Positions 1-46,346 of a DNA stretch of 64,000 bases are shown in pieces (the stretch's first letter is position 1; each line of letters opens with the position of its first letter). Location of the stretch: the NCBI GenBank assembly GCA_950097015.1, contig CATNEN010000005.1, positions 4,278,001 to 4,342,000 of the forward strand. Direction: 5' to 3'. Source of the DNA: Macrostomum hystrix. Lineage: Eukaryota; Animalia; Platyhelminthes. The position numbers were made by a program, and so were the translations under genes. A model generated the notes under the pieces. The model did no database searches. It saw only the letters and a list, made by a program, of their open reading frames with translations, and was not told the DNA's origin.

Positions 1-997
1 CATCACTGTTCGCATCTGTGACATTGTCAGAAGGAATTGGCTCTGGAGATGCTGGAAAAATCTATGGTTAAACTGTTAAATACTTTACTTATTTTAGTAT
101 CTATGGTCTAAACTGAATATTAAAATGCTGGTCTTGAAATAAACTGTCTAAAATTAATATTGAGTTGTCTAAATTTAACATCGGGTGTTTTGAAATAGAA
201 TGGGAAAATGTGTATCATTATTATTATTGAGGGGCGCACGCCGATTGGGTGCTGATTTTTTGTTTATTTGATGTTTGAGGCTGAACAATTCGATTTTTAA
301 AAAAGAAGACGATAGGAAAACAGTAGCATGCATAAGATTAATTTTAGGTGAATAAAATATTTGAAAGAAAACTAGTATTTAAAATAAACAAAGGCATTAA
401 AACAAAAATAAAATATTGAAATTTAAAGAGAAAATAAAACTGTGACTGAAATCACTAGACTAATGTAAAAGGTTTTAAAAAATGTAACGGATTTAGTCCG
501 AAAGCAGATTAAACTCAATAGTTAAAGGTGACTTTATTGAACCATAAATAAGTAGATTATAAGATTCCCTTGATTACTCCTTGATTAAAATTGAAATTAG
601 GGAATTTACTAACTTTAAATAACAATTTAGATGCAAGCATGAGACGCACGATTCTAACCAACCTTTAATGACCGTAGCGACAAAAAATATGCCGAATTTT
701 CTGGATAATGTTAAATTATGTTAATAAAGCAATTATCAGGTTTAAAATCAGCATATACAGATTAGGCTATAAAGACAATATGGAAACAAAATTAGTAAAA
801 GTACATATATTAAAAACTTCACGCGACGCATCAAGAGCAGCATATTCGTGTATACTCAACATTACAATTTTTGCTTACAAAACAAAAAATTCGCTTTCAG
901 GAGTAGTAAACGCTAAATAGTAGGTCAATAAATTATAAAATAGCAGGCTGCCTGAATAAAAATGTTTTTAAACAATCGACTCGAATTAGAGTTTGTT

Positions 998-3442
998 TCA
1001 GCGTGCATCAGCCACAATCTCCTGATACAATGTGACCTCACTTACAGGTCGCGAGTTCGAGCACCCAGCTCCATTCGCAGCATCAGCGCCACCATTTCGT
1101 TTGTCCTTTGGCATCATGGACAGGTAGGTACAGCTGATGCCGTCCTGAAATTAGAATTTCAACCTGAATCAGCAGAGAGTTCTTTGGAACAGAGTAAAGT
1201 ACTGCAACGAAAACTCGGCTTACATCACTGTTCGCATCTGTGACATTGTCAGAAGGAATCGGCTCTGGAGATGCTGCCGACAGCTGCTGCAATGGCACTG
1301 CCTCTTCGGATAACTCTGGCTTCACTGACTTTGCTGGAGGTGTCATTGGTGCGGCCCTCTGAAAGTTTAAAAAAATTGTGAGCTGAAGATTCAGAAGAGC
1401 TTTTATACTAGTTATTTAGAGTACCCAGATTAGGACAATCCTACCTTTCTTCGCCAAAAACATATGATGAGAACTGACAAGATGAGGGTGCAAGCAATGC
1501 TCAGTCCAAGGAAATTAATATAAATCGATCTTTTATACTCGTTGCCTTCTACAAATTTCGAACGGTGACTTACGAGTACATGTGCGTGGCTAGTGAGTGA
1601 AGCAAATCTGTACCTTTTGTTTTTGAGGAGTTCACACTCGCGTTCTCATAGATTTCAAAGTGTGAACTCGGAAAAGAAATCGTCTTAATCACACTAGACG
1701 GCAGCCAGGAAACATTCGCTTGAGCTGCAGTGCATTTCAGTGTGACAAGCGTTCCGTTTTCCCCTTGACAGCAGTTGAGGCACTTCCAGTGTGATGTCAA
1801 GGAGTCAAGGGTGGAGCTGATGAAGCTCTTATTCCATGCCTCACTCGACACTGTCAAGTTGTTCCCGAAGCTATCGAATGCACTGCACTGATGCTCTGAT
1901 TTTGGGTCTGAGCTGGAAGATAAGAAGCTGAATGTCACGTGACCTGACGGCTCTTCGCTGCAGCTCGAGTTGTCAACCGTGATTTCCAGTGTCTCTGGTG
2001 GATCTGAAAGTTAAAATGATCGAAGCTTTAAATAAACTGATAAAATATTCTTCATTATTGATCTGAGCAGCTGTACTCACACAGCACTCGCAGGTATTGA
2101 GTGCTCGCGACTTCATCTCCAACACGACAGCTGTAATTCCCAGCATGTGATGGCTGCAGGTTATGAATAAAGTGAGTCCGGTTTTTACTTCCGAGGGTCA
2201 TGTTAACACTTGGACCTGTCAGCCTGATGTGGTCTGAGAAATCAGCTGGACATCGCACATTGCACTGCACGGTAACACTCGAGTTCTGCTCTGCTGAATC
2301 GGGGAACTTCCCGCTTGATGACTGGAACTCGGCTGCAAGTTCAGATCCACGAAGTATTGTTGCTCGATGAGTAATATTTTCCGAATTTATATATACGGTA
2401 TTATTCAGTTCGGAGTAACAAACTTACTTGTCAGAACTGCTCGATTGATCCACATGTTGACAAAGTTCATGCATTGTCTTACTATGATCGTTTCATTGGT
2501 TATATATTTCCTAAGAAGAACGATTCGCACCTGAAATTTTTTAACATTTCAAAATTTAGCCTAAAGGTGACTAATGTAGGCAAATTAAAAGCATAAATGC
2601 TTTAGAAAATATTTTTGCATTCTCTTCAAATTGAAAGCAAATACGCCGTTGCTAGCTGATGTTGCAAGTAATGGTGGACAATGGTGGACATATTTTCATT
2701 ACTTTTAGTTACAGGACTTCAATGCCTCCACAATTACCTTTTGTCTTGTGCAGTTCACAGTCAGAGTCTGTCCTGATGAAACGTTGGTTGGCGTCCTTCC
2801 GCACAGCCTCCAGGTTCCGTTTTCCGCCTTCTGAAACACGGAGTTGATGTTTTTCGAGTTGCAGTGCTCCGAGCCAAAGTTCAGGTCGGCCTGCGATGTC
2901 CACACCTCAATGTCTGCTGCTCGAGCGTTCAAATTGTCTCCGTAGCTCGTATGTTCATTTTTAACTAATGCTAACAAAATTAGGAGAAATTAGGATTTTG
3001 AATGACAGGATTTAAAATAGCAACTAGAAAATCACTGGTCAGAATTAAGTGCTCACTTCTTGCTTTCATGGACACAGAGCTGATGTTCTCAAACTGCTTC
3101 AGTTTTATCACAAACCAATGAAACCCGGCATCAGTGCTTTCGTTGCCCTCCATGGAGTGAAGAAATGGCCAGTTGCCAACTTCATCAGCTGAGCGACTCG
3201 AGAAGCAAGTAGATATACTATTTTCTTGAATAAAGCTGGACGACTGCCACGATTCTTTTATAAGACTTCTTCGGACTTCAAGTTTGCCTGAAGGTCGTTG
3301 TGAAACATGTCATGGTTTTAGCGTTTACAGAAGCTGAACACGCATTTTGGTTTTCTAACTCACAGTTATCCGCGACACATGGACGCAAAACGATGAATCC
3401 GCAGACAGCTAGGCCGATGCAAAAAACTACTCGACTGTCCAT
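998..3442 (-). CDS. Receptor R1: signal peptide + F-lectin/discoidin-like domain + Ig domain + Cys-rich domain + TM + tyrosine-motif tail (about 565 aa, 9 exons)
   Basis: Hand-spliced exons 3442-3364, 3287-3057, 2964-2738, 2530-2428, 2362-2081, 2003-1614, 1548-1445, 1358-1224, 1144-998, all GT-AG with consistent phases. Signal peptide MDSRVVFCIGLAVCGFIVLRPCVA. Motifs WQSSSF, FLHS, GFHWFVIKL, RAADIEVW, FGSEHC. Ig: VTVQC...LQPSHAGNYSC. TM: FLGLSIACTLILSVLIICFW-RRK. Tail: CTYLSM and VTLYQEIVADAR-stop. Confidence 0.85.
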
Positions 3443-5007
3443 GCTAACAATGTAAAACTTATTAACTAGCTCGCAAAATTCACAGTGATGAGTCTTCTAG
3501 GGGACTTGCACTGCTATGGGACAAGTCGCGTAAATTAGCAGAAGTATATTAATATTTATTTTTTTATGAACTCAATTAATAATAATGAAGATGCAAGTTA
3601 AAATCGCAAGTTGCCTAATATACTTGTAGGACAGAATACAAGAGTCCACTTAGCAACAGAACTCTTGCTTCCAATGCTGCAGTACGAACTACGAGAATAT
3701 ATCTGCAGGCTTAGCTTGCTGGTTTACAAGCTATTTTTGATGGAGAGTTGTAAAATTTGATTCAGATTCGTCCAAACAAACCCTACTATTATACTAAACA
3801 TCTTTCTAAATTTGCAACGAAATTAGCAGTTTAGGTTACTTTAACTTTAGCATTTGATTGACTTGTCTACGTCAAACGAAGTGCAACTTCCTGTTACCAT
3901 TGTTGTAGGGCTATCTTGTCTTGTCGATTACACAAAATTTTAACTATTCTAAGAATCTGGTTTTCATAATTTCGGAGTATTTTAGGTCATAAAATTTAAC
4001 AAAGTATCTTAATATATTTATTCGGCTACTGCGTAGCTTCGGACGGTCCACACTCCGGACTAGAAGGTGTTTCGAGATAGTTAAGGTAGCCGGCCCGGCT
4101 ATCTTACTTAAGGTACTTAAGTAAGTCTTTCTATGTGTTTTTAGAAAACTATACGTCCAACTTAATAAAATAGTCAGGAAACTATCAATATTGAAATCAC
4201 GCTTAGTATAGTAAGATCAGAAAAGAATTATTGACACAGCCTCAGGAAAGAATCAATGATCAGATGTATAGAAACATATTTAAGATAGAAAGAAAGAAAG
4301 TAAACCTAGCCCAGTTGCGCCAGAGGTGCAACCAGCAGCAACGTCACGAGATGCTAATTCTCGAGCTTGTGTACAGCAGCTGTCCGTGGACTAGCAAGGC
4401 ACCACAACTCAACCAAGTTTTTAGTACAATTTTACACTTTGGTTTGAGATTCGAGGCCCCAACCTACAAGTAAAAAAATTCGAAGCTCTACCCAAAGAAG
4501 CTCCCTGTAGTGCAAAGCAATCTGTAAGCCTTGCAAATACGCTTAAGAACATTGTATTTGCATGGCTCACATGCTTCGCGTACACGACGAGGCGTCCGTG
4601 GATCGATACGGCCCAGGAATGGGAGGAAGAAGTTCGGCGAGCGTTCGCTGGGGAGCGTGTGCGTGTGGGACAAAGAAACAGCTGCCCCTGTGTCAGCAAT
4701 CTCCCAGCGTTTCTCCCTCTCTCCCCATTCTGTCTCTGTTGTGCGCGCTGCTTGAATTTAAATACACTGGAAGCGAGAGGCAGAGCTACGCTGCCGCTTT
4801 TCATGTGACTCCGGAGTCCACACAGAAACGGGCCTCTGGCCCGTGGAGCGTTTATCTCTCTGTTGCTGTGGCAGAAGGTAACAGGAAGCCAAAACTTTCC
4901 TGTTATACAATCCATCTAGTTTAAATGTAGCTTTTACGAAGTCAAGCTTTAGCTGAAACGAAGCTATTTGAAGAATACGAGGCAGGCAGCTCGTATTAGG
5001 CAGCTTT

Positions 5008-6508
5008 TCAGTTATTTCGGCAAATCTGGCTCATGTAGATACTGCGAGGCAAAGTTCTCGACTTTCCGAAATTATTTCGCTCTTGCTGTCGTTTAGATTT
5101 GTCGTGTTCAATTTCTCCGGTGTTGTTCCACGATTTCTGACGATGGGACTCAGAGAGTTTTATATGTGAGGAATCAGGGACAACTAAAACCCTCGGGACG
5201 CGAAACGAGCCAATTCATGGCAAAAAATCTGAGGGGCTCGCTTACAAGTATTGTTCTATGGCTTTTTCGAGTCTTCTCTGCTATCAAGCAAATTAAAATT
5301 GCTTTAGCTGCGGCCAGCAGTGAAGCTAAGCTGAACTATATCAAGAGAAGCATTTTTTTTCACTTGATGAAATGCCAAGAAATTGCAGCGCTTTTCCGTG
5401 CTCGTCAAATTACAACTCTGAAGCCGTTCGAACACGGATATTTGCGTTTCCCAGAGATCCACAGGAGCGGGAGCGATGTAGAAAGGCGCTGCCAAATATT
5501 CTCCAGGTAAGAAACCAGATCATTTGCTGTCATTACTGCTGCATAATTCCGCTTCAATTCTGCACGCCAGTCTCGTCCAAACAACTTGAAACCCAAAATT
5601 TATTATTTTAGAGAGTGACTGACAATATGGGCGTGTGCGTAAAGCATTAGACTTATCCTGTCTACAGCAGTTTTATTCTGCACTCTCCTACGTGCGCAAC
5701 TCGCGTGCAGAAGCTGTTTTATGTTATTAAGGACTTTTACTTTCCAACTAAGACACAGTTCAGCATGGACAGTGTGTCCCGTCAAATAGCCAACGTTTTT
5801 TTCAAAGGACTAGTAAGACGCTCGTCAAAACTCCCACCAATACCGACGACATCCCATGATAGATAGCTTCGGAAGTTAGATGCTCAGTAGGTGAAGTTCC
5901 AGCGTTTCCTTTATGTACGAGCTACTGACTGTTTGTCAGCTCACTTGTCACACTTGTAACTCTGACAAGTGCTCTATGAAACGGGGCCCTGATAGCAGAG
6001 AAGACTTGAAAAAGCCTTAGAACAATACTTTTAAGCGAGCCCCTCAGATTTTTTGCTATGAATTGGCTCGTTTCGCGTCCCGAGGGTTTTAGTTGTCCCT
6101 GTGAGGAATATTTGTCTTTGTCTTAATTCCAACGCAGACTTTATTTACCTTGCATAATACAAGAATGAGCGCAGCCATAGTGCTCAGAATCGTTCCCAAA
6201 ATGGCAGATGAAGCTGCGTACAGAAAGAAAGACAGAAAATATTTACTAGACATGTTATTTAAGGAGGATAATCCCAATTAGAACAAAATTGGTACCTTCC
6301 CAAACGCCCCGTGGTTGAAGGCAATTAACAGTTTCAATTGTTCCAGCATAAATGTGCCTATTCGTGATACCGCACCGACTCCAAAGATTTCTGCGTTTTA
6401 AAGCAGCTGCGTTTTAAGTTTTAAAGCAGGACAGATTCACAGAATTCGAGGAGTAGCTGGATGACTGCCAAGAGTCGGCGATACTCAATTTCGAAATATT
6501 CAGCGCAC
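5008..6508 (-). pseudogene. Degenerate receptor paralog R6 (lectin exon with premature stop, TM exon, tail exon)
   Basis: Exon 6508-6296 is 213 bp, the same length as exon 2 of R3 and R5. It reads CALNISKLSIADSWQSSSY with an in-frame TAA at 6414-6416. TM exon 6213-6149 (ASSAILGTILSTMAALILVLCK, GT donor). Tail exon 5148-5008. The intervening intron shrinks to 65 bp once the 5175-6101 element and one TSD are removed. No ATG-led signal exon found. Confidence 0.55.
5175..6101 (+). mobile_element. Non-autonomous DNA transposon with about 110-bp TIRs, 8-bp TSD and a THAP-domain remnant (P/Galileo-like or hAT-like)
   Basis: TIRs begin CAGGGACAACTAAAACCCTCGGGACGCGAAACGAGCC at both ends. Perfect TSD TGAGGAAT at 5167-5174 and 6102-6109. 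Internal ORF 5372+ MPRNCSAFPCSSNY...IFAFPRDPQERERC matches the THAP N-terminal pattern, with the conserved Trp replaced by Cys. Confidence 0.85.
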
Positions 6509-9016
6509 CTAAAAATGTTTTACATGGGCGCGCCTGTGAATATTCATAGCTTTGTGACGCTCTCGGTGTGGACCCAGGTGGTGAAATAAATAACGACAAA
6601 CACCGCGAAGATGTGTGTAGCGGTAGCACTCAGACAATGACGGTAACAGTAAGCGATGACAAATATTATTATTGGCGACGTTTGCGGGTATAGGTATACA
6701 GACAAGCTCGTGGCGTTATTAGCGTGGGTAACAGAAGAATAAGGTTGAATCCTTTCTTGCACTGTGGTGGGCAACAATTATAAAGTGAGGATAAAAGAGG
6801 CTGGGATACCGGTGGCTACGGCCGGTAACAGGACAGCACTCCCTGACCCCAGTGGAACACTTAAGCGGAAGCGGAAGACGGCGGAAGGAGAGCTAAAAAC
6901 GGAGGGCGATGGCGGAAGGAAGGAAGGAAGGTGGCCCTCGAGCTCCCAGCCAGACAGATACATAAGGAACGGGCTGGGGGTTGGCGCACAAACAGAAGCT
7001 TAATTTTGACCCGGCATAATTTATGCCTCGCCTTACAATTAGCTCGCGCAAAAATGCTAACTATAACAAGAAATCATCGATCGCAGAGTACATAGAGCTT
7101 CCGGTCGCACCGCACAAATTGAGATGGTTTCGTACTCTAACGTTTGCTTAAAGTAGCCAATCAGACATTTTAACAATTGGTGGAAATGAATATTAAATTG
7201 ACAAAATTCCAACATGGGTTAAAATGGCCCTAGTTAGATCCACATTCAATGAAACGTCACAGCTTTTCCAAAAGACTGACCATAATTTCTTAGGATTACT
7301 TACAGTTGCTTATTAAGAGATAAAATTTGCGATTAGCGATAAATAGCGATACATTTATAGCGATAAATAACTCATTATCGCTTATTCGCCTGGATAAAAG
7401 CCTCAAAAAGCACAATTATTCGATAGATTAGCAGACTGTTCCCTTGAGTTCGAAGCAGATATATTCCTTAACAGCTGAAAATATGGTGCCAGTGGTGATG
7501 CCTGTAATACACAATGGCTGTAGCTACCCACTGCTATTAACAGCTAGTCTTATTATACGTTTTCTAGCAAATTTTCACCGAACTGTTTCCTTTGAGTCCA
7601 ATTGTATACATTGCTAGTCTCTTGAAACTAAATGACAACAATAAACCTGAATTCTATTTTGAAATAATGTTCAAGTGCTATAATACAAACGGAATAGCTA
7701 TAATTATGACAATTTGTTTTGTACATCGTTGATTATCTCATTCATGTACAAAATTACTATTCAGTTTCAAATTTTCACTCACGAAATTGCTTAAAAAACT
7801 ATAAAAACTCTGATTCTTTCGTTTTTATTTCTTGGCTGATTAAATTATGGCATCAAAATTAAAGTGACATTTTCATTATAATGTACAAAGGTGCCCCTTT
7901 CACCCTGGCGTCGCTGCATCTGTTTCAGCCACCCTGATACAGTGATACTATGAACAAGCTCCAAGCAGGGTTGCACAGCTATGCAACCCCTCAGTGGCAC
8001 CCGCTGATGATTGGTAGCTGGTTTGTGCTCCGATTGGCCAACGTCCAAATAAATTTTGAGTACAATTACACTCAAATGGATCCAGCTTGGACACATCAAA
8101 TTCAATGGACTAATATGATTATTATTTAGAGCTGATTCTCATCGACTTTGAGAGACGTTTGGTAGATAAGAAATAAACAAATAAGCAAAGCGGGTGAGTT
8201 TAGTCGAAAAAAGTGTTTGTTGTCTAAACAAAGCTTTATTAATTAATGTTAACGGAAATATTTTCTCTCGTGAAAAATTATAATTTTTAATTCTATATTT
8301 TGTATTTTTGTTAATGTGTGATACCATGATATAATAGTTTTCGATGTATTTATAATCAAGCAAATTTATTTTATTTAAGCGATAGCGACCGAGCTAAATT
8401 TGTTTTACGCAGTTGCATCGCAACGAGCAACAAATTATTTTGTGCAGGAGTATGCACGATAAACAATTGACTGTAAATAATGAAAGCTTTTCCAAACATC
8501 AATAACGAATCATGCAGGCTACACCATATCAACCATGTACAAAATACCAAGTATCAAAATGACGGGAATATTATTTGCAAGAGGGCTTCGTTGGCACTGG
8601 CACATACTATGACATACTAGCACATACAATTTGTTGACAGTAGACCGACAGCCGGCGACAGGGAAAGACAAGCTCCGAAGACTTACGAGTATGTGAATGT
8701 GACTTTGCCGCGAAATCATGGACTTTGGTTCAAGAAGCAACGGATTAGCCTCTGTAACCACACACCCCACCCAAAATAGGATGCCAGTTAGTATTCGCAT
8801 AAAATTTGAAATATTAGATAGAAGGATAAATTATGTAAATTTAAGAACGAAAATGTAAATTCTTTGACTATACTGTGTTAAAGTGGGATTTAGAAAGTAA
8901 ATTTCCAGTTATTTATTCAATACGAAGCTATTTTAAAACTGAACTGCCATGCAGTGTCGCGTTGGATACAAGCGATTCAGGGATACAAACATGACTTAAT
9001 TGCGCAGATCGTCCGT

Positions 9017-11106
9017 TTACTCGAGAGACCCTGCAGCTAGTTCGGATGAAGCTTGTTCTGTCGGCGAGTAGCGTAACCGGCGCTTATTCTGAAATTTACA
9101 AACACATTTAGTTACTTTGCGTAACAGGCAGACTTAGAAGGTTTGGAACTACTGTAGTTGTCTTGCCTTTATCATTGTTATTGTAGCAAAGGCTACTGAG
9201 ATGATAGCTACGGCAGCGAGAATAAGAACTGTGCTTGCCAGCGCAATGGCATGCGATTTATTAGGATACTCTGCAAATTCAAGGGACAATTATCGCGTTG
9301 TTTAGAAAAGAAAGTTTAATAAAAAAGTCTTGAAAAAAAAAACTTTACCATAGAAACAAAATTCGCGATTTAGATGCAGACTTTTAACAATGGACACACT
9401 CCAAAGTTCATGGTCATTTAGACCAGAAGAAGCTGCAGTGCAATTAACGGTTAGGTTGGCTACAGCGCCACAGGTTTTGCATGACCAAAAAGAACGGATT
9501 GAGCTCTGTTTTGAGTCACTTAAGCTGTATTCTTTTCGAATAAGTTCAAGCCCTAAATCAATTGCTCTACAAAAGTGCGTCGGTTCTGGTTCTGCCGCAG
9601 ACGACTCGAAAGCCAGCGTTGGTGACCGTCCGGCGCACAGGTTCATTTGATAATCGATTTTCAATTCGGCAGGCGGAGCTGAAAAAAAATAGTAATATTA
9701 CTTACCGCAGAAGGGCTGTTGGTACTTGAATGGACATTGTCAACTTACATTCAATAACGAGACTTCTGGTGCTGACAGCAACGTCGTCATCAATTCTGCA
9801 AGTGTACTCACCGGCATGCGACTCATTCACATGATTAATCACGTAAACTTGATTAGCGGTTGCTAGTGTCTGATTCCTACTAGGCCGAGTTAGTTTGATT
9901 CGTGACTTATCGATGTTTAAGCATTTCGAAGCGCATCTCAGAGTCACCGTTTCATTCTTTCTGATGATCGATCTGGGTTCGATTTCCACTGGTAAAATGG
10001 TTTGAAAAAAACACATTTAGTTGAGTTAAAGTTACATTTTTACGATGTGTTGTTTTACCCGCCAAGAAATGCTTTGACCAATGCGATGCATTACTTACCA
10101 GATAGTGACACATTCCACAGCATGTCACGAAAGCTCATGTAATGGTCCAGTTTATTCGCTCCTTCGGTAATTGACTTTCGAAAAGCAACCATCTGGGTAT
10201 AGTGTTTCGAATGTATTTTTTTATGTTTGTCTATGCGATGCAAATCATAGTTTAACACAAACCTAATGGCTACATTGTGCATAACTGATTTTGATTCTCT
10301 ACAGCATTCACTTTAAACATGCTATTCCCATCAGCTTATTTGGTGGCTAAATATCACTTGGCTGTCAGACGCGTCCCTTTGTTTGTTATATTGTTAAGTA
10401 ATTAACTTAGCTTCAGATGCTAAACTCACCTTTGTTAAGCCTCCACAATCGACAAAGAACCATCCGCTGTTTCTGTTGCCAGTTTTTCCACAAAATCTCC
10501 ACTTGTACTTGTCACCATCAAATATAGAGCTAATAGTTTTTGACTCGCAAGAATTCGAGCCAAAGTCAACATTCGATTGCGTAATCCAAATTTCGATGTT
10601 CTGCGCATGGCTTGTGTAACTAATATTATCGACCTCTGAGAACAAGGTTTAGACCGATCTGTTTAGCTACAGGCAGTAAATGAATGCAAGTTCAAAGAAG
10701 GCCAGACTTACCTCCATGCGTGATGTACAGCCTGTTTAACCAAATAGTACTTGGGATAAGCATAATCAGCCAGTGATAGCCGTTGTCTGCAGCAGCAAGC
10801 CCAAAGCCTGAGTGGAAATAGAATTGAGTCTCGGGGTTGCCAAGTCCGCAGTACTTTTCACCTGATGAGCTCCTGAAGCTTGACGACTGCCATGTTCTAG
10901 TCAAATTTGATCTCAAAATAGACTTTAAGCCTGAATGAAACGAAGTTAATTTGAGAAAAACCATTTTAACATTTTTCACTGGCGTCTACTCGTAATAAAA
11001 TAGTGAGAAAAATTTACGACTTACATTGCGAAGCATTCGCTTGATGCACACAATGGGTAATAATGGTGAATAAAAGAAGTGCATGCTTTGCTGTTACAAA
11101 AACCAT
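9017..11106 (-). CDS. Receptor R2: signal peptide + lectin-like + Ig + Cys-rich + TM + short basic tail (about 448 aa, 8 exons)
   Basis: Exons 11106-11025, 10930-10712, 10635-10430, 10192-10099, 9988-9749, 9678-9349, 9270-9167, 9088-9017, with consistent phases. Motifs WQSSSF, YFHS, DNGYHWLIM, FGSNSC. Ig: VTLRC...VNESHAGEYTC. The TM exon is 104 bp, as in R1 and R5, and needs a GC donor (AAG/GCAAGA). The last exon is less certain. Confidence 0.8.
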
Positions 11107-17258: not shown

Positions 17259-20200
17259 ATGGAACCAAGCGTATTTCATTTTTGGACTAAACTTCTATTG
17301 ACGCTGCTGCTCTCGCAACACGCAGCAGCGGATTTGACAACTGAATGTGAGATTATTCGATTGTCTTGTACTATTATTATTATTATTATTATTACTATTA
17401 TTATTATTATTATTATTACTACTATTATTATTATTATTATTATTACTATTATTATTATTATTATTATTACTACTATTATTATTATTATTATAAGCCAACA
17501 GGGCCAAAAGCAGCAAGAGGGAAGACAAGGCGTGCCGACAAAGGCAGCGGACGAACGAGTCCTGCGATAGCGAATATATTTTAGGATTTGGGGCGTCACG
17601 AAGGAAGGAATAACAACGGAATAAAAGCAATACAGAAAAAAAATTTTACGAGCCAGAGCGCTCACGCAGCACGCACTTTGAGCGTGAGCGCACAAATAAA
17701 AGCGGGGCCGACGCCGCCATCCCCCAACCAAACCACCCCACCTGCCGGCCGGCACCCAGCACCCCAACTTGCGGCAGGGATGCACACGCGCGAGCCGCAC
17801 GCACAGACAGGCGGAGGGTCGGCCCAGTCGGCTTAACACGATTACAGAGCCAGTTAAAACCCACCCCGAAATCGCAACCTTATTATTATTACTATCGTTA
17901 TTATTAATATTGTTATTATTATTGTTATTATTACTTTGTGCACGCCGATTGCGTGATAAAAAATAGCAGAAGCATATATATAATTTAGTGTGAAAATAGA
18001 GCAATTTGTTAAAAAGTTTAAATAAAAACAAAAAAAAAGATAATATGAACTTCGTTCTCTACTTCGACTCAACACGTTGGTCATGTTCTATTTTCATAGG
18101 CGTCTTACAGTTCTCTATGTTTGGCAGGCAAGTTTGTGCTTTTCCAGACGAAAGCGGGACATTATGGGACATAATTTGTTAAACAATAACTGCAGGAGGT
18201 CTGTGTGGGCAATGGCACATCATTAGGTGACACTAGACCCGCAGCCAGCGGGGAGGCAATTCTGTCCATTCCGCTGACTCCTGAGCACACACGCATTCAG
18301 ATACTGTACTCAGGCACACGCTCGCTCATTTCTCATCGCCAGGCAGTGTACACTCTCACTGTGCCTTGGAGGTTGGCCCTCAGGGGCGTAAATTGCACGA
18401 CAAGCTCCCAAGCCTTCTTTCCGCGGTTGCACCCAAAATGAATGTGAAATCGCCGCGGAATCGAGATTAAACACAGTGGTGCGAGAGGCAAACGCGTTGA
18501 CCGCTCCGCCACTGATCCCCATTCTAGATTAATATAGAAAATTAACAATTATTATTAGGTTTTTAGAGGCCGAATTAAATAGCTCGTATTTTAACTTTCA
18601 GACATTACAAAGCTTACATACGATCTGTTGTCTATGGTTTGGCGGTCTTCCAGCTTTGTTTTATCTGATGGCAGCCTGGAATGCTCGGTTGCGAAGGCCG
18701 GATCAGTTGTGGCTTTCAAATCGGCAGTTGGGCTGTCTTACGCTGACAATGAGTACCACTGGTTTGTTATGCAGCTCGTCAGGCCCATTTCGCTTCGTGA
18801 GGCACTCATCACAGGTAAGAAGACAATCTTGTGGTTTCGTTAAATGCCAATTTGTGCCATGATAATGAAATAATGCTTACACCTGAACCGAATGGGGTCA
18901 GAGATGCAGCCGACAGCACAGCCGCAGCTTTTGCGCAGTGCATCTGAAGGCTGCGTACGGCTGCTCTGTCCATGGACTGGTGGGACGCCACAGCCACCTT
19001 CAATTACCCCAGCTAATGCTGGTACCCCTTTATAACTAACTGCAAGGCGAGTTGAAGTAATGCAGAGTTTGCCTTGCTAAAGGATAAAAAACTATTTCCA
19101 GTGGAGTCTAGAATCGACTCTCGACCTTCAAGTCGTGAGTCCGAAGCTCTAAACCACTAGGCTATAACCCGTTAGTAGCCTACGGGGGTACAATCGGCAC
19201 AATATGACCTAGTTTTGCGTCCATTGTTACGCAAAACTGGTATCGTTAGTATCGTGTCTGTATGGAGTTCCATTTCACTTTTTGACAACGAAGTCGCATG
19301 GTTAAGCGCAATAAACAGAGTCACCTCCTGGCTGGGGTTCATTCGCCAACCAGACGCACCAAAGCACAAATCCGATAGGGCACTTGAATTGTTGTTGTGT
19401 CAATAAATATTTATCGCAGCAGTATTTTACACAGGAACGAATATTATTTCTAGTTATAATTGAGTGACTTGCAGGACTGCAGACAATGGCTCATTATTTG
19501 GTTAAACAAGACTTGCAGGCAGCGTCAATTCTGCCCATTTTGCTGACTCCTGAGAACACGCTCACACGGGTGTGTAAATCTGCCCTGACTTTCTAACTGT
19601 CAGGCAAAGTACACTCACTGTGCCCTTGAGGTCGGCCGTTAAGGGTGTAAATCGCACGACAAGCCACAAAGCCTTCTCTCCGCGGCCTTCTCTCCTATTT
19701 AGTTCATGGTCATGCCGCGGATTTGAGCTCAGGGACAAATCCCTGAACGCGTAAACCGCTATTCCAACGGTAAGTCCTGATATAAAAAAACTACCGATAA
19801 TCTTTCCGGCAAAGTGTTAAAGGCAGTTAACAGGCAAATAGTAATGCCTGCCTGGAGAATTTCTGGACAAACTTCTTCCGTTGTAGGTGTGCAGGCGTTG
19901 CCAGCCTATTGGATTAAAGGAATCGAACTATGGACCGCACCAGTGGCTGTGAATTTCGGCCCCGAACACTGCAACTCGTCCAGTATTAGGTCTAGGTTCA
20001 TCGCCACAAGGAACCAATGGAGCTTTTGTGCTTCGACGAGCACCTGGGACGATGGAGTCGGAACTGCTAGGTTTCGCTGCATTAAAACTCAGAAGGTACG
20101 GCTCAACAAAAAATATATTAACATCTTTTACCTCATTAATTTGTTATACTAAACCAGTGTCAGTTCAAATTGCAATTTATTGTGTTTCTAGACTCAAACC

Positions 20201-20903
20201 ATATTGCTCAGAAAGTATCTAGCTCACATTGGCGAGGATCGCCGATGCATGGGATTTGAAGCCATTCATTTGGTTAGAGTTTTAGCTAAGCGTAAGTGGC
20301 TCATGAGAATTTAATGCCAGTATTTGTTAACATCATTGCTTTTACTCGTAATTTTCAAATTTCTGACAATTTCAGCACCAGAGCCAGACAGCAACCAGCC
20401 ATTATACTCGAAATCCAGGAGCTGGGTATATGGCATTGTTACCTTCGCTGCGTTGATATTAGCTACTGCCTCTGTTATTACCGCTTGCGTAGCAGTGAAT
20501 AGAAAGGTAAGAATAGAAAGGTACAATATCACTTCATTCAGTGACAGTAGACCCGGCAGTTAGAGGCCCTTAAGTGTAATCCCAAAATTAGTGTAGTTTC
20601 CTTAAATTAGCATCGAGCTCAGGAGCGAGAGGTAAATTCGTAAGACAGATTTTCCATTCACCAAAGTTGAATCTTATTAAACAGGTGCAAAAATAAACGT
20701 ATAAGGTCGCTCTTGGGGACATCAAATTTAGCGAAATGTGTTTTTCCTCAAATCCACAAATCCCACAGAAAAAAACTTGCCCCATGAAGAAGGAAGAATT
20801 TCAAGAATCTCCCTGGTGGGAATCTGAGTTGCAGCCAAGCAGACAACACACCAGAGCGCCTCCGAAATTATTTGAGGACGAAGCTTATTATTCGATCGCT
20901 TAA
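17259..20903 (+). CDS. Receptor R3 (opposite strand): signal peptide + lectin-like domain + TM + tail, no Ig or Cys-rich exon (about 291 aa, 6 exons)
   Basis: Exons 17259-17346, 18602-18814, 19887-20095, 20192-20291, 20376-20506, 20769-20903, all GT-AG with consistent phases. Motifs WRSSSF, DNEYHWFVMQL, IELW...FGPEHC, LLRKY...CMGF. TM: WVYGIVTFAALILATASVITACVAV-NRK. Tail ends EDEAYYSIA-stop. Confidence 0.8.
17370..17935. repeat. (ATT)n microsatellite split by a GC-rich insert of about 390 bp (17493-17880)
   Basis: ATT/ACT triplet runs at 17370-17492 and 17881-17935 flank a GC-rich unique segment in intron 1 of R3. Confidence 0.8.
18189..18513 (-). mobile_element. tRNA-headed SINE, family B copy 1
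   Basis: Reverse complement matches the copies at 22.4, 23.1 and 26.3 kb (head AGTGGC-GAGCGGTCAACGCGTTTGCCTCTCGCACC; body GGGCCAACCTCCAAGGCACAG and CTCAGGAGTCAGCGGAATGGACAGAATTGCCTCC). Confidence 0.8.
18905..19165 (-). mobile_element. tRNA-derived SINE, family A copy 2
   Basis: Head TAGCCTAGTGGTTTAGAGC...GAGTCGATTCTAGACTCCACTGGAAA and the shared family A body. Confidence 0.8.
19512..19768 (-). mobile_element. SINE family B copy 2 (diverged)
   Basis: Contains the reverse complement of CTCAGGAGTCAGCAAAATGGGCAGAATTG and AGAAAGTCAGGGCAGAT. Confidence 0.7.
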
Positions 20904-23791: not shown

Positions 23792-25553
23792 TCAATAATA
23801 CAAATTTGTATATACTGGAAGCCTTTCATCTTTGAGTACTTTACTCACCAGAAAATTTGAAGAGCTCCCGTCAATATCCTGTAGGGATTGCTGAGAGTGC
23901 GACAAAGCTTGGGTGCGGATGTCTGGTGGCAGCCAAGGCTTCTGCGGCACCTCTCTATTCAGGACAGTCAGTTGATGGCCAGAATTGGATTCTTCCGTAG
24001 ATCTCTGTAAGCAGATTTTCTGCAGATTTATTAATGGTCGAGTTTGATTAAAAGAAAACGTTATGAAAAAATGATATTGAATATTGATATTTTTGCTTGC
24101 TTGCCTTTCTGCCAAACATCAAGAGACTTGCTGCGAGTACAATAATCACTAAGGCAGCGATGCAAATCGAAGCCAGCACCAATGCTGAAAAAATGAGTTG
24201 CTATGGTAAGTGATGCACAAATTTAGGTAAAATTAAGAACAAACTTAACAACTGAGACTATCTTTAGTTGGAAGTGATTGCTTACAAAAGCCAGTGCTTT
24301 TAGGGCAGCTTCTGTCAACAAAAATAGATTTCTCGATCTTGTAACTAGTTCCGCCATTCACTGTGCATTTGACTGTCATGTTAAGAAAACGGCTGCAGTT
24401 TTCACATAGCCACGAAGATCTCAGCAAGTTTCTATGGAGGTCGCAGGTTGGTCTGTTCTTAATTAGCAACTGAACATTTTCGCCGTTTAAATCGTAGGCT
24501 GTGCAAGCGTGTTCTGAAGTATCTGGTGATTCGAAGAAAAATGTAATATCGTCACTGGGTTGACGTCGGTTGCAAATCCCTTTTTCAGCTTTGATTGTTA
24601 ATTGACTTGTCGAGTCTGCAATAAAATAAATATTTTCATCAAAAAAGCAACCAGGAGACAAGCAGTGTGCATGATATTAACAAACGGAATAAAAAGTCGC
24701 GTACCTGTTATATCAATTTGATTCAACCAAATGTCCACAAAATTCATACACCTATCCGTTTCTTTACTGTTGCCTGCAGTAACATTCTTTCTTAGCAACA
24801 ACATACGAACCTAGAAGAAATGTATCTTTGATAACAGATTATCATTTTAATGTAGACCGATAAATTATAAGAAGTTTTACGCACCTCTTGATCACATTTG
24901 ACCGTCAAGTACCTTTCTTCAATCTTAGAAAACTGAGTTTTTCCACAGTAGTGCCACATTTTTGGGTTATACTGTGAACTTACACTAGCTGAGCAGTGTT
25001 CGGATCCAAAGTTTTGATACAGTTTTGATGAGAACACTTCGATATCGGCTGCTCGATATTGAACGTTGGATTCTGGAAGGTAATTGTCGATAACACCTAC
25101 CTAATCGGGCCAGATGTCGTTCCACCTGTTGTTCTTATTAGTGTAATAACGTAACAAAAAACTCACCAGATCTACTTTTGACTGTCACAGACTTGATTTT
25201 TTCAGTCTTATTAAGTGCTATGATAAACCAGTGGTAACCCTTATCAGCAAATTTATTATTAGTTTCAGAATGGAAAAATTTAAAACTGTTGACATTGTTG
25301 GCTGAATGCGCTTTAAAGCAGGTTTCTTTTTTAGTGTGTGCTAAATACTGCGATGTCTGCCATGAGTCTGCTATATAGTTTGATGTGACGTTTAATCCAC
25401 CTGCAAGGCGCGAAGTTAATTTTTTACTGGTTCAATAAAATATTTTTTGGTCATAAAGCGTTTCAACTCACATTTTCCTTTTTTAAGCTCGCTCAAAATG
25501 GCGCTTCGACATGTGGCAAGCAATGTGCAGAAGATAATTCCAAAGATTTGCAT
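23792..25553 (-). CDS. Receptor R4: signal peptide + lectin-like + Cys-rich + TM + tail, no Ig exon (about 415 aa, 7 exons)
   Basis: Exons 25553-25472, 25400-25167, 25072-24885, 24810-24705, 24615-24286, 24184-24105, 24019-23792. Motifs WQTSQY, FFHS, DKGYHWFII, RAADIEVF, FGSEHC, LLLRK...CMNFVDIW. TM: LVLASICIAALVIIVLAASLLMF-GRK with a GC donor. The tail end (VYTNLYY-stop) may be spliced differently. Confidence 0.78.
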
Positions 25554-27501: not shown

Positions 27502-27693
27502 CATTAAAAGTCCAATTTTCGATTTGGAGACTGTTTTCAACTAATTCAGTGAAAGCAATAGGCTGAAACTAATTTGTCTATTTTAGGTATCTGTCCGATT
27601 GATTTCAAGCTGTTTCGAAATCTGCCAGAAGTGAAAACGACTATCACTGGTTAGCAGTGCAACTGAAGACAGCAACATGGATAATATACCATT
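27502..27693 (+). pseudogene. Degenerate receptor lectin exon fragment R7
   Basis: One frame with several stops reads ...YFRYLSD*FQAVSKSARSENDYHWLAVQLKTATWI, matching the DNGYHWL/DNEYHWF motif of R2 and R3. It is preceded by a plausible acceptor (TTTTAAG at 27501). Confidence 0.55.
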
Positions 27694-29459: not shown

Positions 29460-31155
29460 TCAATTAGAGCCATTAGCACCATTACCATCAGCGACAATTT
29501 CTGTATAGAGGGTCCACTCACTCGGTGGTCGCTCCGAATCCAGACTGAGATCACTTTGAGCTGACTTAACAACTTCGTAGCTGCATTCAGCCTGCTGACT
29601 GAGACTTGGATTATAATTTGAATCGCTCAATTGCAGGCAAACCTGAGGCTTAACACTCTGGACTTCAAGTTCGTTGAGCTCCTGAGGAGTTGAAAAACTT
29701 TCTGCTCCTTCGTAAAATTGGCTTGCAGTGTTCTGAAAACCATTTATACATTGTCCTCTCGAGCGCTGAAATGTTTAGACTAATGCTTCGTTTTACTTTG
29801 TCAAAGTTTGTCTATAAAACTTAGAAAATAGAGATTTTACCAGCTTGAAAGTGCAGATGCCGACAGCAACAGCACAAGCAACAGCAGTGAGTATGAGCAG
29901 CATTGGTAAAATTGCTGTTGCACTAAACACAGACTTTTTAGAGGCTTAAATGTTTATAAAATAAACGACTTTACATAAAAATCTTAAATAAGAAATTTAA
30001 AGTTCAAGGACAACAAATGCGAATCTTACGACAAATCAGAGAATTAAAAAATGTTCGATTTGTTACATCATGTGACGCCGTACACGATAATGTCAATGAT
30101 GAATATGTGCCGCTGCAATTTAAGCAAAACCAAACCGACTTCAGTACATTTGCCACTGGATCACAGGTCAGGTCGTCAATCGTATTTTGTTTAAACAAAT
30201 TCATCCGGTAGCCATTCTCGTCTGTGGCGTAGCACTCGTGCTGGGGTGCAGGATTTGAGTCCGAAGATTCGAAACCGAATGTCAGATTAGAAGCTTGCTG
30301 ATCTACGCAGATATTCTCATCAACAGATATTTTCAGCTTTTGCGTCGGATCTGAAATTTATGAATCGTGTTTAAAATTATTTGTTTCCTTATATTATCAT
30401 GTTTTGATAGCATATAGCTTTGCTACTCACTCGATACACTGACAGTGCTAATCCACATGTTGACGAAGCTCATACACTGCTTACGCTCATCGCTAACATT
30501 GCTGACGTTCTTTCTAAGCAGAATCATTGTACTCACGACCGGCTAAGTTAATAGTTATTTGGCTATTCATTAATGACTCAAATTGTAGATCATTGAGCTC
30601 TAAGAGGGCAATCTTTTACCTTTACCTGGTGGCAGTTGACAATCAGTGTTTCGTTGGACTTCACTGTCGGCTTAGTCCTGCCGCACATGCTCCAATTGCT
30701 CATGGTTTCGTAAAACTTTTTGCTAATTGCTGTTGAGTTGCAGTGCTCCGAACCGAATTCATAGTCGTTTTGCGTAGTCCATATTTCAATGTCAGCTGCT
30801 CGACTGTTAAGTACGTCCGTCAGATTATCCTTTTTTTCGTATTCTGAAACATCTAAAAAAATCATGAGAGTTTTTATCATGAAAATTGAAAATATACTTA
30901 AAAGTACTTTAGATCGGAAAAATTGGCATGTTTAATAATTACCTCTATTTTTTATCGATACAGATGCAACTACTTGACTCTGGTTTAACTTGATCACTAA
31001 CCAATGATGTCCATCGTCTAGATATGTACTCCCTTCACCCGAATGGAAGTATCTGTATGTATTTTTCTGACCAAAAGAAGAATTGAAGCAATAGTGAAAA
31101 CGAGTTGACGACTGCCAAGAATGCTTAAACGAGCGGTTGTCGATGCTCAGGCTAC
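29460..31155 (-). CDS. Receptor R5: lectin-like + Cys-rich + TM + tail with ITSM-like motif (first exon unresolved)
   Basis: Exons 31155-30943, 30852-30620, 30542-30431, 30350-30030, 29944-29841 (104 bp TM), 29765-29460, with consistent phases. Motifs WQSST, YFHS, DDGHHWLVIKL, KNRD, RAADIEIW, FGSEHC, ILLRK...CMSFVNMW. Tail has SYEVV and RPPSEWTLYTEIVADG. Confidence 0.78.
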
Positions 31156-32369
31156 CTGAAATAATATTTTCTTCGATCAGTATGTGTAGTACAAACTCAA
31201 GGCCAGAGGTGCGCAGATAAAAACTTTTTTTCTCATTTCCTACAAGTCAGGCACTCCCAAGTTAGTGTAAAGGCACGTGGTAGAATCTCAGAAAGTCAAT
31301 AAGAATTAATATTATTCAATAAGCTGAATTCTATGCGTAATCGCACCCACCCCACCTCTCCTTGGCTTACCGTACAACGTCGGACCAATCAGAGCGTGGT
31401 AGCCTTGCTAATAGTATTTGTATTCCTCTAGCGACCATTTATCTCTCTTTTCACTTCAGATTTGCAACTAGTCAGTATAACAACTGAGCCTCGACCTCAC
31501 TATTAGGTTTATTTAATCGAGTATAGAACCGCAGGGCGTCCTATCTGTCTATTGACCTTTACGTTAAAAGTCAGTAGTATCAATTGGACCAAATTACTAC
31601 TAAACCATCAACGGCTATAGTGCCTCTGGACAATGGGATCAGCACACGGACAACAAGAGTAGACTGCTGCACCACTTGTGTTGTTGTCCATGGATCACGT
31701 TTAGATCATAGATGCATGCTAGGTTTTATTCCTTCTTAGTTTAAAAAGTAAGCAAATTTGAACTTACATTTTCCCATTTCCGCTTCAGCAGTGCATAGCA
31801 GCATGCATACTATCATGGAATAAAAGTTGACAAGTGGCAAATGTTTAGAAATCATTTGAGTTTCTTTAAATGGCAGAGTTAATAGTTTGTAGCGTTTAAT
31901 GGTCTAAAACTTTCTTAAGAATGTCTTTTCTGAATACCTTCGCTCGTGATTTAAGCAAGACACAATCTAAGAAAGGTTTAAATTAGCAATTCATATTTAT
32001 ATGCCCATTGTCAGTTTATGTAACAAGCAAAATGCTGAGCTACAAAGTTGAAGTTAGCGCTATTAACACGCACGGTTTACACGCGCACAAATTTCTTGCT
32101 AATATCATCTTTTCTGATCGTTAAAGTATTAGCTAGGACTGATTTCGATGCTAATAATTGATAGTCTAATTACTGCCAATCCTTCATAGTCCTGAAAAAT
32201 ATGGATTTGTTTATACATTTGCTTGAAGCAACTTTCCTATAGAGATAGATGATGGCCCAAAGCGAGTTTTTGGCTGTTTTAATCACCACCAAATGATCAT
32301 GCAATTTAATAGACTAAACCAGTGCATTGGTGCAAGCCTTTTTGTTAATTATAGTAACAGCTACTACAG

Positions 32370-32787
32370 CAGGGGTCGGCAAACTCCGGCCCGCGGGCCA
32401 GATGCGGCCCTCGAAGCTCCCAAATCCGGCCCGTTGACCCTTCTGACATCTACAGTGTCCTGTTTCATCTCTCTCGTGTCTAATCTCTCCCGTGTCTAAT
32501 CTCTCCCGTGTCTAAATTCTCCCGTGTCTCATCGCTCTCGTATCTAATCTCTCCCGTGTCTCAACTCTCCCGTGTCTAATCTCTCCCGTGTCTCAACTCC
32601 CCTGTGTCTAATCTCTCCCGTGTCTAATCTCTCCCGTGTCTCATCGCTCTCGTATCTAATCTCTCCCGTGTCTAATCTCTTCCGTGTCTAATCTCTTCCC
32701 TAGCTGTCTTTTATACAGTCAATGCGGCCCGCTGTCGTCTTTTAGGCTCTCTCTTTGGCCCGCCAGCAATAAGTTTGCCTACCCCTG
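32370..32787. mobile_element. hAT (Charlie-like) MITE carrying a 16-bp minisatellite
   Basis: TIRs CAGGGGTCGGCAAACT / AGTTTGCCTACCCCTG, subterminal GCGGCCC motifs, degenerate 8-bp TSD TACTACAG / AGCTACAG, and internal TCTAATCTCTCCCGTG repeats. Confidence 0.85.
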
Positions 32788-32899
32788 AGCTACAGCTATC
32801 GTTCAGATAAGATGTTATTTGCTGATTTTATTTCAAAGAAAAATCTAATTTCTTTATATTGGTACATGTACAATACGTGAGACTTCTTGTTGTGACTAC

Positions 32900-33110
32900 A
32901 GAGGGTCGGACTAACGACTTGAAGGTCGGGGTTTCGATTCAAGTCTTTGTGTCCATGACTTTGTGTCCATGAGACAGACACTGGAGTTTACACAGCTGTT
33001 AAATTGAGTACCGGCATTTGAGGGTTGGTTGTAACATCCCATCAGTCCATGGACCTAAACAGTCGTACGCAGCCTTCAAATGCGCCGCGCTATATAGCTG
33101 CGGCTGTCCA
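32900..33110 (+). mobile_element. SINE family A copy 3 (rearranged)
   Basis: CGACTTGAAGGTCGGGGTTTCGATTC head and the body CCCATCAGTCCATGGAC...GTACGCAGCCTTCA. Confidence 0.7.
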
Positions 33111-33139
33111 AAGACCACTTAGCTACTTCAGTAGTACTT

Positions 33140-34860
33140 GCTACTTCTGATAGTCCAGTTCTATCAGATATTCCAGTACAATCTGATAATAATCCAGCAC
33201 TCTCTGATAATCCAGCACTATCTGATAATTCAGCACTCTGATAATCCAGCACTATCTGATAATTCAGCACTATCTGATAATTCAGCAGTGCTATCTCATA
33301 ATTCAACACTCTGATAATCCAGCACTCTCTGATAATCCAACACTATCTGATAATCTAACACTCTCTGATAATCCATCACTCTCTGATAATTCAGCACTAT
33401 CTGATAATTCAGCAGTGCTATCTGATAATTCAACACTCTGATAATCCAGCACTCTCTGATAATCCAACACTCTCTGATAATCTAACACTCTCTGATAATT
33501 CACCACTCTCTGATAATTCACCACTCTCTGATAATTCAGCACTCCCTGATTATCCAGCAATCTCTGATAATCCAGCAATCTCTGATAATCCAACACTTTC
33601 TGATAATCCAACACTCTCATAATCCAGCACTCCCTGATTATCCAGCAATCTCTGATAATCCTAAACTCTCTGATAGTCCTACACTCTGATAATCCAGCAC
33701 TCTCTGATAATCCTACACTCTCTGATAATTCAGCACTCTGATAATCCAGCACTCTCTGATAATCCAACACTCTGATAATCCACCACTCTCTGATAATTCA
33801 GCACTCTCTGACAATCCAGCACTCCCTGATTATCCAGCAATCTCTGATAATCCAGCAATCTCTGATAATCCAACACTCTCTGATAATCCAACACTCTCTG
33901 ATAATCCAGCACTCCCTGATTATCCAGCAATCTCTGATAATCCTACACTCTCTGATAATCCTACACTCTCTGATAATTCAGCACTCTCTGACAATCCAGC
34001 ACTCCCTGATTATCCATCACTCTCTGATAATCCAACAATCTCTGATAATCCAACACTCTCTGATAATCCAACACTCTCAGATAATCCAACACTCTCTGAT
34101 AATCCTACACTCTCTGATTATCCAGCAATCTCTGATAATCCAACACTCTCTGATAATCCTACACTCTGATAATCATACACTCTGATAATCCTACACTCTC
34201 TGATAATCCAGCACTCTCTGATAATCCAGCAATCTCTGATAATCCAACACTCTCTGATAATCCTACACTCTGATAATCCTACACTCTCTGATAATCCTAC
34301 ACTCTCTGATTATCCAGCAATCTCTGATAATCCAACACTCTCTGATAATCCTACACTCTGATAATCCTACACTCTGATAATCCTACACTCTCTGATAATC
34401 CAGCACTCTCTGATAATCCAGCAATCTCTGATAATCCAACACTCTCTGATAATCCTACACTCTGATAATCCTACACTCTCTGATAATCCTACACTCTCTG
34501 ATTATCCAGCAATCTCTGATAATCCAACACTCTCTGATAATCCTACACTCTGATAATCCTACACTCTCTGATAATCCTACACTCTCTGATAATCCAGCAC
34601 TCCCTGATTATCCAGCAATCTCTGATAATCCAACAATCTCTGATAATCCTACACTCTGATAATCCTACACTCTGATAATCCTACACTCTCTGATTATCCA
34701 GCAATCTCTGATAATCCAACACTCTCTGATAATCCTACACTCTCTGATAATCCAACACTCTCTGATAATTCAGCATTCTGACAATCCAGCACTCTCTGAT
34801 AATCCAGCAATCTCTGATAATCCTACACTATCTGATAATCCAGCACTATTTGATAATCCA
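33140..34860. repeat. Minisatellite of about 1.7 kb, 18-bp (and 16-bp) unit ATAATCCAACACTCTCTG
   Basis: Direct tandem repetition. The minus-strand ORFs are QRVLDY repeats. Confidence 0.95.
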
Positions 34861-45102: not shown

Positions 45103-45204
45103 ATGCTAGATTGATTATTCAAGTCTACTCTATTGATCTTTTATTTATGTACTTGCTGGATACCAGCTTGAAGGTATACAAATGAACCCTGTGTACTTCC
45201 GGTT

Positions 45205-45965: not shown

Positions 45966-46346
45966 GCCAAAGTATGGTCGCAACTTACGCTCGTAATTCA
46001 AAGTTTAAACGATCAATCTAGTATCTACAGGGACTTTAAAGACTCGTTTAAACTACTCAGTCTGGATGAAGTAGTTTAGATAGTAAATTCTTTTTATTAT
46101 AAATCGGTTTCTTTCTATTTATGGGATTTTTCAAATGTGTCAATGTTGTACTCTTGTGAATGGATTGGTTGACATTTCTGCTACAAGTCCTACAAGTACA
46201 AGTACTGCTTCAGCAAATTCACCAACTGAATTCACCTCCTCATTGGGTCTTCCCAGGCCGCAATCTGTTTGCTAATCATCGGCATGATGCTTCGCCACGT
46301 TCATCTTTTTGCTTCTATGGCTTTTTTATTACCTGTCATATCCCTT

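Follow-up and report, generated by a model that had tools for sequence, protein, structure and literature searches.

Near the start of a 64-kb window of Macrostomum hystrix DNA (64,000 nucleotides of contig CATNEN010000005.1, positions 4,278,001 to 4,342,000, numbered here from 1) lies a gene, termed R1, which is transcribed and encodes a type-I receptor with a signal peptide, a head of ~190 residues, an immunoglobulin (Ig) domain, an Ig-like domain, a transmembrane (TM) helix and a cytoplasmic tail. F-type lectins are known as soluble or mosaic fucose binders, and the R1 head is on balance probably a true, if very divergent, homologue of them, which has kept the equivalents of Arg79 and Arg86 of the eel agglutinin AAA (1K12), an F-lectin, and would hold a putative ligand, not necessarily fucose, at the pocket end of the fold. 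The head adds a divergent form to a known domain, within a receptor architecture that the F-lectin reviews consulted do not list.

The relationship is seen with sequence profiles. A full-domain profile of the family (A5), run against 177,635 distinct sequences of the Protein Data Bank (PDB), returned six matches, all of which are F-lectins: MsaFBP32 (3cqo, E 4.8e-4), lectinolysin (7.6e-4 and 9.4e-4), SpX-1 (2j1r, 0.019), 1k12 (0.027) and SpX-3 (2j22, 0.056). With hhalign the same profile aligned to ten of this genome's canonical FTP domains at E 2.9e-4 over 66 columns, extending from QSS to RAxD. Homology to F-type lectin domains is thereby detectable in sequence, and, as judged from the profile scores (E 2.9e-4 to 9e-4 against F-lectins), the motif pattern is beyond chance. 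It is the full-domain profile alone that is informative, as exon-only profiles gave weak hhalign scores (E 0.012-0.054) and the exon 2 profile alone had no match in the PDB. The exon 3 profile alone matched only designed Kelch repeats there, which were judged to be noise. Features in the ESM-Atlas point to PF22633/PF00754 clusters with a score of 0.95.

Against a library of 1.84 billion proteins, profile A3 gave 27 matches at E <=0.001. Sources were looked up for 20 of the 27: 18 are uncharacterised proteins of M. lignano, one is a JGI/IMG metagenome 'hypothetical protein' and one is a turtle cluster, the members of which are fucolectin-5-like and which represents the only named match outside Macrostomum. 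The M. lignano relatives (PAA53557.1, here called P0002, A0A1I8H6B9, A0A1I8JJS2 and others) match the head profile at E 1e-36 to 1e-10 and share both family and architecture with the window copies, of which they are counterparts from another species or paralogs; none is annotated as a lectin, all being 'uncharacterised' or arbitrarily named. Because nearly all of the sources looked up are M. lignano, the receptor family looks, within the reach of this library, restricted to Macrostomum. Searches of the literature on Macrostomum with F-lectin, fucolectin or discoidin turned up no paper on this receptor family.

The same genome also contains at least 150 canonical single-exon FTP domains, detected with PF22633 and bearing the motifs C.QSS, AIDGN, SCTHT, WW and NRxDCCxxRL. 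These lie on C1, C2, C3, C7 and C39 (for instance L007-L016), many of them closely packed in tandem, as at C3:4453030-4462596 and C1:8455116-8463417, and that genome scan found no PF22633 domain in the cluster to which R1 belongs. The canonical set amounts to an extensive expansion of conventional F-lectins and is distinct from the receptor family.

The fold of the head was modelled with AF2 on the full-length M. lignano homologue P0002 (residues 20-210), with the window exons supplied as alignment rows; among the genome loci, none of the paralogs carries its complete head in a single open frame. The model (pLDDT 86, pTM 0.85) is an F-type jelly roll, as had been predicted from the sequence, and it sits within the galactose-binding-like superfamily, with 100 Foldseek matches at E <=1e-3 and 188 VIA chains at Z >=8. 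When compared by VIA-align, 1K12 comes first (Z 11.7, 141 residues, root-mean-square deviation 3.6) and ranks 1-10 are all F-lectins. The first-pass annotation had proposed a divergent F-type lectin head, and the proposal stands on four independent lines: the PDB profile search, which matches F-lectins only, the hhalign comparison with the own-genome FTP domains, the fucolectin cluster and these ten structural neighbours.

Loci L001, L003, L005 and L006 read through exons 1-3 along an in-frame intron, and L004 does so through exons 3-4. In these more distant groups (L001-L006; C38, C39, C8) the exon 2/3 intron, and in L004 the exon 3/4 intron, keeps the frame and contains no stop, so that naive open reading frame (ORF) calls run through it and insert ~20 spurious head residues.

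Four further copies besides R1 were found by tblastn within the window and aligned exon by exon. Their heads, with the residues of interest, are as follows.

R1: 2428-3442, minus strand; FLHS, KAR and RAAD.
R2: head exons 2-3 at ~10430-10934 (exon 2 ~10704-10934, exon 3 ~10430-10633), minus strand; the histidine kept in FHSG, both arginines lost (ITHG, HAQN).
R3: head 18613-20290 (exon 2 18613-18813, exon 3 ~19886-20095, exon 4 20198-20290), plus strand; FKS, ITG and WIKG, all three residues lost.
R4: head 24706-25413 (exon 2 25168-25413, exon 3 within 24885-25091, exon 4 24706-24810), minus strand; FFHS, KSRS and RAAD kept.
R5: head 30432-31159 (exon 2 30944-31159, exon 3 within 30620-30860, exon 4 30432-30539), minus strand; YFHS, IKNR and RAAD kept.

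In R1 the translation runs WQSS, C, FLHS, FHWFVIKL, SMKAR, RAADIEVW, three cysteines (EHC, LCG, NC) and VRIVLLRK..CMNFVNMW, which is the order of motifs first noted (QSS, H, a W-hydrophobic strand, R, R..IE, C, C, C and a final strand). A direct count likewise returns the H-X32-R spacing reported for R1, R4 and R5, each of which then reads RAAD. The losses were described correctly for R3 and only in part for R2, where the two arginines have gone while the FHS histidine is still in place. In all five copies the exon 2/3 intron is in phase 1 and falls <=2 codons after the position of the first arginine.

How much of the F-lectin binding site, then, has survived in the copies that keep these residues? 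In the canonical lectins fucose binding is associated with the basic triad His52, Arg79 and Arg86, the motif HX24RXDX4(R/K), a calcium motif h2DGx and a vicinal Cys82-Cys83 pair, while in AAA Phe45 and Tyr46 line the pocket that takes up the methyl group of fucose (review by Vasta et al., PMC5712786). Residues were mapped through HMMER alignments to 1K12, lectinolysin and MsaFBP32 and through hhalign to the own-genome FTP domains. In the 1K12, lectinolysin and own-genome alignments the first arginine of the family falls on Arg79 ('TITNR' against 'SVSxKxR') and the RAAD arginine on Arg86 ('ERISGAEI' against 'xRAADIEV'), with the family histidine lying on His47 of FYHGS, five residues before His52. 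The MsaFBP32 alignment places this histidine three residues before the canonical one, and in no alignment does it fall on His52. From the histidine to the tryptophan of HW, which aligns with AAA Trp60, the family has 13-14 residues, and to the first arginine it has 33. In AAA, Trp60 is 13 residues from His47 and 8 from His52, and Arg79 is 32 from His47 and 27 from His52; the numbering agrees with the residues of the review cited above and with the printed HMMER alignment. The family spacings are thus near the values counted from His47 and agree with that assignment. The position equivalent to His52 is N in R1, N in R4 and S in R5, within a hypervariable loop.

The triad that was thought to be kept in R1, R4 and R5 is therefore two residues out of three, the arginines corresponding to Arg79 and Arg86 while the histidine does not correspond to His52. 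Nor does the rest of the canonical signature appear. The motif HX24RXDX4(R/K) is replaced by H-X32-R with a longer stretch between the arginines, which in R1 reads R-T-LVKNEHTSYGDNLNA-R across an RNA-verified junction, giving 16 intervening residues and no acidic residue at +2, and which amounts to 7 to 17 residues in R4 and R5 under predicted splicing. The readings KNRD (R5) and R-S-E-X5-R (R4) fit GT-AG rules but hinge on predicted phase-1 acceptors, the RNA check covering R1 only; in R4 the choice of acceptor agrees with the M. lignano homologue P0002 (SRADSIVKGR). After the first conserved cysteine, where h2DGx would be expected, come SADEVGN (R1), SFGQKN (R5) and SANNVN (R4), with no DG, and neither the five paralogs nor the M. 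lignano homologues have a cysteine between the arginines. Because the histidine is misplaced, the His52 site is variable and the motif, the calcium site and the cysteine pair are missing, fucose binding cannot be assumed. Since Phe45 and Tyr46 line the fucose-methyl pocket, however, the aromatic-aromatic-His-Ser segment of the family still lies at the pocket end.

The exons of R1 were predicted from reading frames and GT-AG sites and then checked against transcript contigs over positions 900-3500, assembled from four public runs in three studies. Spliced contigs confirm every intron, the CT..AC skips on the plus strand being GT..AG on the gene strand, with joints that include 3364/3287, 3057/2970, 2738/2530 and 2428/2332; the phases are consistent throughout a gene of ~557 codons in 9 exons. 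Because the spliced contigs match the predicted introns and the phases agree, R1 is a real, transcribed gene. The interval 2428-3287 on the minus strand, within which the head had been placed, corresponds exactly to exons 2-4 on the evidence of transcript joints and translation, with exon 2 starting at 3287 and exon 4 ending at 2428. All of the exons lie on the minus strand.

Exon 1, 3364..3442, minus strand: start codon and signal peptide (MDSRVVFCIGLAVCGFIVL...), ending in phase 1 (translation, joint 3364/3287).
Exon 2, 3057..3287, minus strand: first half of the head, with WQSS, Cys, FLHS, FHW and SMKAR (translation, joints); His codon 3157-3159, Arg codon 3058-3060 equivalent to AAA Arg79, donor right after this Arg.
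Exon 3, 2738..2970, minus strand: 16-residue loop, RAADIEVW, then the three conserved Cys (translation, joints); Arg codon 2921-2923 equivalent to AAA Arg86.
Exon 4, 2428..2530, minus strand: final head strands, VRIVLLRK...CMNFVNMW (joints).
Exon 5, 2081..2332, minus strand: Ig domain, matched by Pfam Ig_3 (E 1.4e-5) and by Ig_2 (E 3.6e-5) (joints).
Exon 6, 1614..2003, minus strand: membrane-proximal Ig-like sandwich.
Exon 7, 1445..1548, minus strand: TM helix LGLSIACTLILSVLIICFW, then RRK (joints, translation).
Exon 8, 1223-1358, minus strand: cytoplasmic tail (joints, translation).
Exon 9, 998-1143, minus strand: end of the tail and stop codon (joints, translation).

Pfam gives no match for exon 6; the AF2 model of this exon (pLDDT 70) has seven strands and weakly matches T-cell receptor constant and MHC II beta-2 domains (Foldseek E ~6e-3). 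The tail holds TYLSM (a YxxM motif) and, near the C-terminus, TLYQEI, which fits TxYxx[IV], so that an ITIM/ITSM-type motif follows the single TM helix; the RNA-verified exon 9 ends ...VTLYQEIVADAR, with TLYQEIVADAR as its last residues. The element T-x-Y-x-[ED]-I-V at the extreme end of the tail is kept across species, R1 reading TLYQEIVADA, and M. lignano P0001 and P0028 reading TVYLEIVADA and TEYLDIV, respectively.

Exon 2 and exon 3 profiles were searched over the 220-Mb assembly, giving 78 and 65 matches, respectively, in clusters on C5, C8, C38 and elsewhere. With 58 further loci added to the window copies, every head that has both exons was scored (n=57), and the state of the histidine and the two arginines was found to be distributed as follows.

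His and both Arg kept: 44/57 heads (77%).
First Arg lost only: 5/57 heads.
His lost only: 3/57 heads.
Second Arg lost only: 1/57 heads.
His and first Arg lost: 1/57 heads.
Both Arg lost: 2/57 heads (window R2 and L031).
All three lost: 1/57 heads (window R3).

The mosaic of kept and lost basic residues that had been remarked on among the window copies thus recurs genome-wide. Within exon 3 the second arginine is among the least variable columns, and the head varies most in two loops, one following QSS and one following FHS (67 paralogs). Exon 2 and exon 3 were each given a maximum-likelihood tree, and in these the terminal branches of R2 and R3 measure 1.9-3.6 changes/site against a median of 0.05-0.07; with L031 counted in, which was sampled in the exon 2 tree alone, the range is 1.8-3.6. 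R3 is the longest branch in both trees, and R2 and R3 are sisters in neither, with few columns in each. As these extreme branches are estimated over the whole head, heads without the arginine pair have changed everywhere and not just in the pocket. Because the pair has been lost and the entire head has evolved fast, R2 and R3 probably no longer bind the ligand class of the other copies, their binding being altered or lost. The first-pass annotation had inferred sub-functionalised ligand specificity, but relaxed constraint or a new function would fit the branch lengths at least as well, and the pattern is in keeping with selection that was relaxed or redirected once the ancestral ligand had been lost.

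It is possible, though we lean the other way, that R2 and R3, rather than being sub-functionalised receptors, are copies in decay or already without function. Branches so far above the median are what such copies might be expected to show, and R3 in particular has no Ig exons ahead of its TM exon, lacks the Ig-like exon as well, yielded no signal-peptide exon within 1.8 kb upstream and carries a repeat-bearing intron of ~1 kb (18822-19886) between exons 2 and 3. Nearby are decayed fragments that resemble head exons 2 and 3, at 6294-6509 (minus strand) and 27612-27683 (plus strand). Set against this, the head exons of both R2 and R3 are open, with good GT-AG sites and conserved phase, and they retain the core residues WQ/RSS, HW, IE.W, FG..C and W..C..T together with the cysteines, while R2 still has its signal peptide, Ig, Ig-like and TM exons.

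Open frames recur within the R3 intron and upstream of R3 (LRGVNCTTSSQAFFPR-like, at 18300-18450 and 19560-19700), a recurrence that suggests insertion of a dispersed repeat. The decayed fragments, which fall between intact copies, are probably what is left of further duplicates. In R4 no Ig exon was detected.

A second alternative concerns the nature of the head rather than the fate of its copies, namely that it represents a generic discoidin/CBM32-type module for the recognition of proteins or lipids, for example in self/non-self discrimination or mating, in which the histidine and arginines are structural. This we consider unlikely; the points in its favour are given here together with others that weigh against an F-lectin head. 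Foldseek ranks CBM32 domains (E 2e-6 to 1e-4) above the F-lectins, with 1K12 ninth, and lists SUN and APC10/Doc1 domains as well, so that the margin inside the superfamily is small; in VIA-align the CBM32 and discoidin-type domains follow at Z <=10.2, CBM32 lying ~1.5 Z below the F-lectins. The heads do not reach the Pfam gathering score for PF22633 or PF00754, whether taken exon by exon or as read-through frames. Exon by exon the weak matches lean to PF00754 (E 0.0076 and 0.013, best 16.8 bits) over PF22633 (E 0.055, 14.5 bits), with cut-offs at ~28, and the four open frames of 177-197 residues across exons 2-3 give nothing at E <=0.1 (best PF00754, E 0.15, <=12.7 bits); this was the outcome of the Pfam search for F5_F8_type_C and FTP domains that had been advised as a check. 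The modelled homologue P0002 is itself only 19-53% identical to the window exons, compared exon by exon, and the conserved arginines and histidine could be structural. Loop hypervariability would also suit protein recognition, and the fold superfamily includes binders of lipids and proteins such as FVa-C2 (PMC5712786). What tells against the generic module is that the family profile matches only F-lectins in the PDB and no CBM32 or F5/8 type C chain, that the first ten structural neighbours by VIA-align are all F-lectins, and that the conserved arginines fall exactly at the ligand-binding positions Arg79 and Arg86. The two arginines also tend to be lost together (Fisher one-sided p 0.0105, a value that ignores phylogeny).

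That R1, R4 and R5 are functional fucose binders with an intact His-Arg-Arg triad, and R2 and R3 sub-functionalised non-fucose binders, is very improbable, for although F-lectin homology and fold, the conservation of all three residues in 77% of paralogs and the precedent of oyster, in which five F-lectin isoforms have the triad and five do not (PMC5712786), speak in its favour, the histidine is at or near His47 and never at a His52 site that is itself N/N/S and hypervariable, the arginines of RNA-verified R1 are separated by 16 residues instead of the 6 of the motif with no acidic residue at +2, and the calcium motif and cysteine pair are missing.

With an F-lectin homologue that has kept its arginine pair as the favoured reading, a possible mode of action can be outlined. 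The ligand of the head, probably a glycan or some other group of polar or anionic nature and not necessarily fucose, would sit at the pocket end of the F-lectin fold, with the invariant arginine pair acting as the anchor. The hypervariable loops around the pocket may set the specificity, and the signal would pass on through the tyrosine-motif (TxYxxI) tail.

How does such a receptor compare with known systems? With the F-type lectins (AAA 1K12, MsaFBP32 3CQO, lectinolysin 3LEI and SpX-1 2J1R), which are its sole sequence matches in the PDB, the head shares the jelly roll, as seen in the homologue model, and a collinear series of QSS, Cys, aromatic-aromatic-His, a WW/HW strand, '..V.I.NR' and 'R....E[IV]'. 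It has arginines at Arg79 and Arg86, and some of its paralogs are without the basic residues, as are some oyster FTL isoforms (PMC5712786). It differs in having no histidine at the His52 site, no h2DGx and no Cys82-Cys83, in an arginine-to-arginine loop of 7-17 residues against 6, in remaining below the Pfam thresholds, and in sharing its chain with Ig domains, a TM helix and a tail that bears a tyrosine motif. In the reviews consulted, PMC5712786 among them, the partners given for F-lectin domains are CTLD, HTLD, pentraxin, CCP, TM and FA58C, and Ig does not appear. The CBM32 and F5/8 type C domains belong to the same galactose-binding-like superfamily, and are approached through Foldseek, VIA-align (Z 9-10, slightly below the F-lectins) and the weak PF00754 scores.

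A more distant parallel is provided by the Siglecs and other lectin-headed receptors with ITIM/ITSM tails. Some Siglecs have lost their essential binding arginine. By analogy, the lectin-type head, Ig stalk, single TM helix and TxYxx[IV] tail appear common to both systems, as do tandem, fast-diversifying clusters and members lacking the essential arginine. The Siglec head, however, is a V-set Ig domain, whereas here it has an F-lectin fold, and there is no evidence of common descent. Tentatively, and with more doubt than conviction, the family could be regarded as a set of Siglec-like tandem glycan-sensing receptors built on an F-lectin head, in which the arginine pair anchors, the loops tune and receptors of the R2/R3 type are re-targeted or non-binding partners, making it a convergent family for immunity, allorecognition or mate recognition.

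Elsewhere in the window, which has few long ORFs and a G+C content of ~40%, there are large minisatellite arrays at 32467-34861, 43225-46728 and 47172-50420. Their units measure 16-18 nt (~95 copies, 33189-34861), 21 nt and 34 nt, and there is one of 20 nt made up of purines only (~160 times, 47172-50420), which accounts for the GC skew of 1.0 at 47172-50420.

The outcome for Macrostomum is that a cryptic head with the F-lectin fold tops a large family of receptors with Ig domains, a TM helix and a tyrosine motif, apparently in one genus. Standard annotation misses this head, since Pfam stays below threshold and the homologues are uncharacterised or arbitrarily named. Correcting the assignment of the histidine guards against a fucose-binder label, and in its place there is a testable hypothesis for the binding site, comprising the arginine pair and the variable loops, for which the 57 paralogs represent a natural series with and without the pocket residues.

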